This document shows, in pieces, positions 60,183 through 64,000 of a stretch of 64,000 bases of DNA. The notes beneath the pieces were generated by a model. The model saw nothing but the letters and a program-made list of their open reading frames with translations, had not been told where the DNA came from and made no database searches. The position numbers and the translations under genes are program-made. The stretch comes from Adineta vaga. Taxonomy: Eukaryota > Animalia > Rotifera. Numbering within the stretch: the first letter of the stretch is position 1; every line of letters starts with the position of its first letter. Where the stretch lies: contig CP075497.1 in assembly GCA_021613535.1 (NCBI GenBank), positions 4,030,001-4,094,000 on the forward strand, written 5' to 3'.

Positions 60183-63084
<2,902 letters not shown>

Positions 63085-63128
63085 ATCCCAATGATAAACC
63101 AATCATTGGCAAATTTTATCTGAATATT

Positions 63129-63218
63129 CACAATATATATTGATTGTTAATGATAATTGAAATGTCCAGAATCCTATATCGATTACTGTTTCAATTTGAA
63201 TGTATCAATGTAAATGTG
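63129..63218 (+). promoter_or_regulatory. SECIS element (type II, CC apical variant) in the SELENOO 3'UTR
   Basis: ATGAT at 63150-63154 opposite TGAA at 63197-63200; helix 2 63155-63164/63187-63196; helix 1 63136-63144/63204-63212; CC at 63166-63167; mini-stem AATC/GATT. Confidence 0.8.
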
Positions 63219-63641
63219 TTTGTTCATTGTAGATATTTATTCTCGCAGAAATTTTCCATTCTAATTTCTTTCAACCTATCCCAACAGACATAAACAAGCG
63301 AATTGAAAAATTTATGTAGTCATTGGAATTTGTTTCGTTTTATTTTTTGCTGATTTATATTTTATAAAGCAAAGGTTGTTTTTCATAAAATAAACTCATT
63401 TTGTACAATAAAAAAAATCGGCGATCAACATGCAATGAATAATAAAAAATATGTGCTAAGAAAAACCAAGAAAAGAAAAACAAAATTTGGAAATGGAATG
63501 AACGGATTTAAGTCGCACGAAAATAGTCTCAACAAGAGCAAGAAAATGATGAGAAACGATCAAAAATTGAACTATACAATTTCAAATACGAGAAACAAGA
63601 GAGAAAAATAAACACCATCACCGGTACAATGAACCGAGATT

Positions 63642-64000
63642 TTATGATGAAATCTTTATTGTTGGATTTGAATTTAGTTCTTGATTCGATACAATTTTAT
63701 CATCATCAGTTTCAGCAAGAAAATCAGCAAATGAAACAACATGGCCACTGTTACCAGCTATTCGACTTGGTGTTTTAGGTGAACTTGATAAAGCTTCAAA
63801 GCCATTGGCGACTTTTGGTATTGTTCGAATAACTTCACCTGTTACTGAACTCGTTCTTCTTGGTGCTATTTGTGATGTTTGAGTTGTATATGAACTACTA
63901 CGAGCACGTGAATATTGAGATGAGACTTGTTCATTACATGTATTGGATTTATTTGGACATAAATATCGACACAACCAACATCGTAAACCACAACAACAAA
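63642..64000 (-). CDS. 3' end of a gene entering from the right; Cys-rich then Ser/Thr-rich tail
   Basis: Open frame CCCGLRCWLCRYLCPNK..VVSFADFLAETDD..SS*. Product unknown. Confidence 0.6.
   Translation of the reverse strand, partial: CCCGLRCWLCRYLCPNKSNTCNEQVSSQYSRARSSSYTTQTSQIAPRRTSSVTGEVIRTIPKVANGFEALSSSPKTPSRIAGNSGHVVSFADFLAETDDDKIVSNQELNSNPTIKISS

Follow-up and report, generated by a model that had tools for sequence, protein, structure and literature searches.

A cysteine-coding selenoprotein O gene in the bdelloid rotifer Adineta vaga is followed by a SECIS element that is probably a decaying relic

Near the end of the 64,000-nucleotide stretch of the Adineta vaga genome analyzed here (the window) lies a SelO gene that raises a simple question: what is a fold with the shape of a SECIS, an element that belongs in mRNAs with an in-frame UGA, doing behind a gene that encodes cysteine where selenocysteine (Sec) might be expected? 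A first-pass annotation took the element to be an apparently intact SECIS orphaned by a single-base Sec-to-Cys change (TGA>TGC), and offered as alternatives that Sec and Cys paralogues coexist in the genome or that the element is kept for another role. It also proposed that the fold be scored against shuffled sequence, that relatives be aligned for TGA versus TGC and for compensatory stem changes, and that tRNA-Sec be sought in the genome. We have followed these lines, and the comparison of related sequences makes it probable that a TGA>TGC change specific to this lineage left the SECIS behind as a decaying relic, or "fossil".

We built and translated a model of the SelO gene, checking that it stays in frame. 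It occupies positions 60328-63084 of the plus strand, with 16 exons and 638 codons, and its introns (46-96 nt) are GT-AG throughout; the real start codon may lie upstream of 60328. A micro-exon of 10 nt (GTGCTGCCAT) at 60894-60903, flanked by introns of 52 and 48 nt, is required because the conserved ...GDGAAMYLGE... motif would otherwise fall out of frame. In a search of the animal's own genome, Pfam family PF02696 matched the exons with E values of 4.6e-40, 1.1e-12 and 6.2e-10, and the model aligns over both the SelO (pseudokinase-like) domain, which places it in the family, and the eukaryotic C-terminal extension. Since its 16 exons give a stop-free reading frame, the gene is intact, and its coding branch is no longer than the branches of its relatives. 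The intron between exons 14 and 15 varies in length, from 58 nt in the window (62678-62735) to about 385 nt in relative L021 (2299-2683) and about 560 nt in relative L036 (639-1200).

The coding sequence ends CGT CTT CGT GTT ACC TGC TCT TCA TAA, that is, RVTCSS-stop, and no in-frame TGA is found across the 16 exons, split codons included. A TGA split over the intron 60697/60794 was considered and ruled out, as the junction reads T-GT, a Cys codon. The ending, the position of the TGC and the absence of an in-frame TGA are thus as first annotated. Having no in-frame UGA near its C-terminus, the SelO of the window is a Cys homologue and not a selenoprotein. Over the 25 columns of coding tail and stop in alignment A2, the Cys codon is the only change specific to the window.

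Table 1. Features of the SelO gene and of the sequence downstream of it (positions in the window)
Feature	Position	Strand	Remarks
SelO exons 1-8	60328-60429, 60479-60568, 60628-60697, 60794-60841, 60894-60903, 60952-61090, 61147-61292, 61349-61472	+	Gene model
SelO exons 9-16	61519-61738, 61785-61954, 62003-62037, 62094-62294, 62352-62472, 62526-62677, 62736-62935, 62996-63084	+	Gene model
TGC (Cys) codon	63073-63075	+	TGA (Sec) at the same codon in 16/17 related bdelloid SelO sequences
TAA stop	63082-63084	+	Invariant, 18/18 sequences
Proximal stem loop	63088-63109	+	8-bp stem CCAATGAT/ATCATTGG (63088-95 / 63102-09), 6-nt loop
Type II SECIS homologue (probable relic)	63136-63212	+	Homologous element in 17 relatives (alignments A1, A2, A3)
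SECIS helix 1	63136-44 / 63204-12	+	9 bp, one G.U
SECIS internal loop	63145-49	+	
SECIS core	ATGA 63150-53 and 3' TGAA 63197-200	+	In register with helix 2
SECIS helix 2	63155-64 / 63187-96	+	10 bp, two wobble
SECIS apical bulge TCCAG	63165-69	+	CC = 63166-67, 12 nt after ATGA
SECIS mini-stem AATC/GATT	63170-73 / 63181-84	+	4 bp
SECIS apical loop	63174-80	+	
C versus A in all 17 relatives	63167	+	First A of the invariant unpaired apical AA; A3 column 126, A>C
T versus C in 16 relatives (L028 set aside)	63187	+	Top G-C pair of helix 2 becomes G.U
G versus A in 16 relatives (L028 set aside)	63210	+	Helix 1 U-A pair becomes U.G
First AATAAA past the SelO stop	63389-63394	+	About 175 nt beyond the SECIS; stretch conserved in L021 too

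A type II SECIS carries at its apex two unpaired adenines, or rarely CC, some 10-13 nt after the AUGA of its core. The fold behind the SelO stop has the parts of such an element (Table 1): the AUGA and the 3' GA, which supply the non-Watson-Crick quartet at the base of helix 2, form a core that is invariant in all 18 sequences; helix 2 has a length within the usual range of about 9-12 bp; helix 1 lies below an internal loop; and the apex has a mini-stem. The 10-bp helix 2, the CC 12 nt after ATGA and the AATC/GATT mini-stem of the first-pass annotation are all present, after small corrections of position. The fold had been placed about 75 nt downstream of the gene, but it is nearer, helix 1 starting 52 nt and the ATGA 66 nt from the stop. 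What is missing from the usual setting of a SECIS is the in-frame UGA in the gene.

The element stands out by its pattern and not by its folding energy. A custom scanner, requiring ATGA and GA in register, a helix 2 of at least 9 bp, AA or CC 10-13 nt past the ATGA and a helix 1 of at least 6 bp, found 63136-63212 as the sole match on the plus strand of the 64-kb window, and in 60 dinucleotide shuffles of the window (7.7 Mb) it found 0.63 loose matches per 128 kb, none equal in quality. A second match, on the minus strand at about 45750, was set aside as chance; it falls within coding sequence, in an exon of a PITP-like gene. RNAfold recovers the SECIS helices of the window, but their energy does not differ significantly from that of shuffles (z = -0.66), a measure that is uninformative in sequence with 70% AT. 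The Rfam SECIS models gave no match on the window at E <= 10; they also missed the SECIS elements of nine Sec-coding relatives, so that their silence here is uninformative, and these models are too weak for the AT-rich bdelloid elements. Scoring against shuffled sequence thus supports the element by the scanner, but not by energy.

Direct reading of the sequence between the SelO stop and the SECIS finds no AATAAA or ATTAAA, and the AATAAA listed in Table 1 is the likely poly(A) signal of the gene. Two related contigs that carry the SECIS, L032 and L035, are spliced and therefore are transcripts. Since no poly(A) signal precedes the element and these transcripts include it, the SECIS likely lies within the SelO 3'UTR.

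Relatives of the gene were collected by profile-free search, with a single exon (exon 15) as the database query, which returned exon-sized ORFs of related animals whose contigs were then fetched, and by one metagenome scan. The 17 related sequences that span the end of the SelO gene make up, with the window, alignments A1, A2 and A3. Several of the ORFs halt at ...RVT, as is expected if a TGA comes next, and 16 of the 17 sequences do read GTT ACN TGA TCN TCN TAA, that is, V-T-U-S-S-stop; the other one, metagenome contig L042, has TGC at the Sec codon, as the window does. All 17 have a homologous SECIS in the 3'UTR. The mark of a fossil SECIS, namely orthologues whose corresponding codon is TGA and is followed by a homologous element, is therefore found in 16 of the 17. 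The closest relative, L033 (85-92% identity), and L029 break off just short of the codon or at its first base, so that TGA and TGC cannot be told apart in them.

One of the Sec forms, L028, comes from assembly GCA_905249995.1, which belongs to the deep-branching bdelloid Didymodactylos carnosus (PMC7943196). Because this species has both the TGA codon and the SECIS, Sec appears to be the ancestral state in bdelloids, and the comparison as a whole documents SelO as a predicted selenoprotein across bdelloid rotifers. The lack of the upstream Cys of the CxxU motif, noticed in the first-pass annotation as RVTC in place of CVTC, is real and is a trait of bdelloids at large, the relatives reading R-[ILMN]-R-V-T-U-S-S. 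In L023, L024, L025 and L030 SelO is followed on the opposite strand by a convergent 7tm_1 (GPCR) gene; the corresponding place in the window holds an unannotated minus-strand ORF (63642-63974).

Alignment of these sequences gives direct evidence of a conserved structure. In A2, 95.5% of cells are paired over the four helices and 9 pairs change on both sides; none of 500 shuffles reaches the observed level of covariation, and sliding the partners destroys the signal. Compensatory changes back every helix of the SECIS (helix 1, helix 2 and the mini-stem). Because pairing and covariation exceed those of the shuffles, the SECIS is a genuine RNA element conserved in the SelO mRNAs of bdelloids, and the proposed comparison of relatives has yielded both the TGA codon and the compensatory stem changes.

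This comparison also supports a smaller hairpin, which begins 3 nt past the stop and 12 nt past the Sec/Cys codon. It is found at the same place in the 17 related loci, with 91% of its cells paired and both-sided changes in three of its eight pairs, the variants CCAATGAT/ATCATTGG, CCAACG../..CGTTGG and TCAACGAT/ATCGTTGA being compensatory; in L042 its loop is larger by about 8 nt. This conserved hairpin a few nucleotides from the stop resembles the proximal stem loops (PSLs) described at the start of the 3'UTR in the mammalian C-terminal-Sec mRNAs SelS, SelK and SelO (Cockman et al. 2019, PMC6844570), which would be its closest known analogue. The PSL of SelK has, like the bdelloid hairpin, an 8-bp stem and a 6-nt loop (PMC6844570), and the bdelloid hairpin too follows directly upon the stop with the UGA a few codons ahead; the likeness is one of shape and place alone, there being no sequence homology with the mammalian PSLs. 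In a SelS reporter, recoding fell in the presence of mammalian PSLs; the SRE of SelN, by contrast, is a coding-region element and increases recoding (PMC6844570).

We searched the 6-contig, 100.8-Mb assembly to which the window belongs (G000:C6:4030001-4094000) for the Sec system and for other SelO copies. A tRNA-Sec is present, at 66.7 bits and with an ARAGORN call of SeC(tca), together with SepSecS (300 bits) and two selD/SPS loci. Furthermore, a GPx gene (locus L011, G000:C6:10299738-10299801, plus strand) has an in-frame TGA at its active site (...NVATF-U-RVT...) and, 68 nt past its stop, a SECIS with an AAA apex that matches Rfam SECIS_1 at 26.3 bits; it appears to be a working selenoprotein gene. 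On account of tRNA-Sec, SepSecS, the two SPS loci and the UGA-containing GPx with its SECIS, we conclude that the Adineta vaga genome still uses Sec.

The last exon of SelO and its UTR are single-copy in the assembly. The sole other SelO gene (G000:C4:10955117-10956430, minus strand; L001 1405-2871) is an intronless ORF of 488 codons that matches PF02696 at 369 bits, has a hydrophobic N-terminus and ends ...KKLIISCSS. It is a Cys form of a different type, shorter and of bacterial-like architecture, and coexisting Sec and Cys paralogues, judged from this assembly, consequently do not explain the TGC. In the same genome Rfam SECIS_1 gives weak, sub-threshold matches (23.6-29.4 bits) at C2:339978-340040 (L010), C4:9843154-9843218 (L012) and C1:17908994-17909063 (L014), which lie 39-52 nt past the last ORF of three different copies of reverse-transcriptase retroelements, some with in-frame TGA codons near the ORF end. 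These matches could have arisen by chance or could mark a 3' hairpin that belongs to the retroelement; selenoprotein-coding retroelements have been described in other animals (PMC8557442).

If Sec was lost from this SelO gene, the question becomes whether its SECIS shows it. At nucleotides 14-15 after ATGA all 17 relatives have AA, against CA in the window, where the CC stands at nucleotides 13-14; the apex reads CAAG or AAAG in the relatives and CCAG in the window. The first-pass annotation had linked this CC to the SECIS of vertebrate SELENOO. That link does not hold: the Sec-coding relatives all have AA, the second C of the window is derived, and a CC apex, which is functional in mammalian SelM and SelO, is confined among SelO SECIS elements to mammals (Mariotti et al. 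2012, PMC3316567). Judged from the aligned apices, the CC of the window is a derived lesion that points to decay, and not a conserved CC-type SECIS.

Two further changes private to the window fall in the helices (Table 1), where all retain pairing as wobble, so that the fold is complete. The description of the element as apparently intact is therefore right for the fold, but not for the positions that are otherwise invariant: among 17 sequences, with the outlier L028 set aside, unique changes at such SECIS columns number 4 in L042 and 3 in the window, as against 0-1 in each Sec lineage. A binomial test of these singletons against the end-branch share, which is post hoc and covers 12 events, gave p = 0.007 for both Cys forms and p = 0.013 for the window alone; three-taxon relative-rate tests, with 5 versus 2-3 changes, were not significant (p 0.24-0.7). 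The energy of the shared structure is -8.9 and -7.9 kcal/mol in the two Cys forms and mostly -10 to -13 in the others, although that of Sec form L041 is weaker still, so that the Cys and Sec ranges overlap. Together, these comparisons weakly suggest relaxed constraint on the SECIS of the window. Its divergence from L021 is 13%, whereas four-fold degenerate sites diverge by about 32%; therefore the conversion must be recent unless some constraint is still acting, and the element has clearly not been through a long period of unconstrained drift.

The second Cys form, L042, likewise keeps a complete SECIS fold. Its AUGA/GA core, helix 2, AA and mini-stem are preserved on a long end branch (0.31-0.33 changes per column), and its helix 1 has an insertion of 1 nt. 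A test of the monophyly of the window and L042 on 425 columns gave no resolution. On 899 columns (exons 12-16 and UTR) the two group together in 0% of bootstrap trees, and forcing them together costs 7.7 log-likelihood units, a borderline rejection (AU p = 0.049). The window and L042 therefore probably represent independent TGA>TGC changes.

The single-base change with an orphan SECIS proposed in the first-pass annotation accordingly has in its favor a TGA at the exact codon in 16 of 17 relatives, a covarying SECIS behind it and a genome that keeps the Sec machinery. Two other readings have to be weighed against it. In one, the organism has a Sec form, either beside the Cys form, the other haplotype having TGA, or in place of it, base 63075 being an assembly error in an ordinary selenoprotein gene. 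The TGC is known from the assembly sequence alone, and as the reference is a collapsed 6-contig assembly, allelic differences are invisible in it; a complete fold and a genome with all the machinery for reading UGA are also what this reading would predict. However, the TGC is accompanied by the three window-only SECIS changes, one of them in the invariant AA, which is the pattern expected from loss of the UGA and not from a lone base error. Furthermore, another natural TGC form, L042, shows that the group does undergo such conversions, and a heterozygote would still imply a real Cys allele. We consider this reading unlikely.

In the other, the gene is a Cys form whose SECIS, perhaps with the proximal stem loop, is selected for a Sec-independent job, such as binding of the SBP2/L7Ae type in mRNA stability, localisation or translation control. 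That two Cys forms, probably independent, both have a complete fold agrees with such a role, as do the preservation of so much of the element in L042 despite its long end branch, the wobble pairs by which every helix change of the window preserves pairing, and a divergence from L021 well below that of four-fold sites. Against it stand the loss from the window of one of two adenines that are invariant in 17 other sequences, the concentration of unique changes at invariant positions in both Cys forms and the helix 1 insertion in L042. In addition, a Sec-independent role of a SECIS was found for no gene in the literature searched, and a young conversion accounts equally well for the retention. 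This makes retained function quite unlikely. It would be a larger claim, and one that we hold improbable, that SECIS and stem loop are under Sec-independent selection in at least two bdelloid Cys lineages, or else that the clone is a TGA/TGC heterozygote, a standing Sec/Cys polymorphism in an asexual animal. That the hairpin arose by chance from AT-rich sequence and has nothing to do with Sec insertion is scarcely credible in spite of its unremarkable energy and the missing Rfam match, as it is homologous, with covariation, to the element of 16 Sec-coding relatives, has no equal in 7.7 Mb of shuffled sequence and shares its invisibility to Rfam with true SECIS elements; the alignment already refutes it.

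The loss of Sec that leaves a relic SECIS would follow a simple course. In the ancestor, the UGA of SelO would have been read as Sec by means of a type II SECIS in the 3'UTR, with a small stem loop right after the stop. One transversion in this lineage, TGA>TGC, would then have replaced Sec by Cys, and the protein, a SelO-family enzyme of pseudokinase fold ending in RVTCSS, would still be produced, now by translation without recoding. The SECIS, its function gone, and the proximal stem loop would persist in the 3'UTR as leftovers, and decay would have begun with the loss of one of two invariant apical adenines and the turning of two Watson-Crick pairs into wobbles. The reverse order is possible, in which the gene, its SECIS already weakened, was rescued by the Cys codon.

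Sec-to-Cys conversions are common (Mariotti et al. 2012, PMC3316567), and fossil SECIS elements are already known elsewhere, in GPx4 of canarypox virus (Mix et al. 2007, PMC1802603) and in SelK of Drosophila willistoni and D. persimilis (Chapple and Guigo 2008, PMC2500217). As in those cases, a Cys (or broken) homologue retains a recognizable form of the SECIS that its Sec-coding relatives use, and this is taken as a sign that the codon changed recently. Unlike D. willistoni, which has lost Sec, Adineta vaga keeps tRNA-Sec, SepSecS, SPS and other UGA genes, and Sec loss is therefore gene-specific. The bdelloid case also differs from both in having an element that is nearly complete and was hit first in the AA motif, and in that bdelloids include another Cys form that keeps its SECIS and probably arose independently. 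Bdelloid SelO is like vertebrate SELENOO in its family, PF02696, in the position of Sec three residues from the end (VT-U-SS) and in the SECIS in a short 3'UTR. It differs in the lack of the Cys of the CxxU motif (R-x-R-V-T-U), in the Cys that stands in place of Sec in the window, and in the AA apex of its Sec forms, the CC of the window having come from a separate A>C change and not from any kinship with the mammalian CC apex.

No new mechanism is revealed by these results. What they add is the bdelloid lineage, a host that keeps Sec, a nearly intact element hit first in its AA, a second Cys form with a SECIS and a conserved hairpin right after the stop. The definition of the bdelloid SelO SECIS and of its post-stop stem loop should also aid annotation, since gene callers end these genes at ...RVT. 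SelO in this animal would thus be a Sec-to-Cys replacement caught early, with the whole Sec system running and many close relatives still using Sec, and the UGA/SECIS and UGC/relic-SECIS versions form a natural matched set of one gene. Such a set could address how fast a SECIS decays once it has no job and which lesion comes first, here an apical adenine, and whether the codon change is driven by a weakened SECIS or comes before the weakening.
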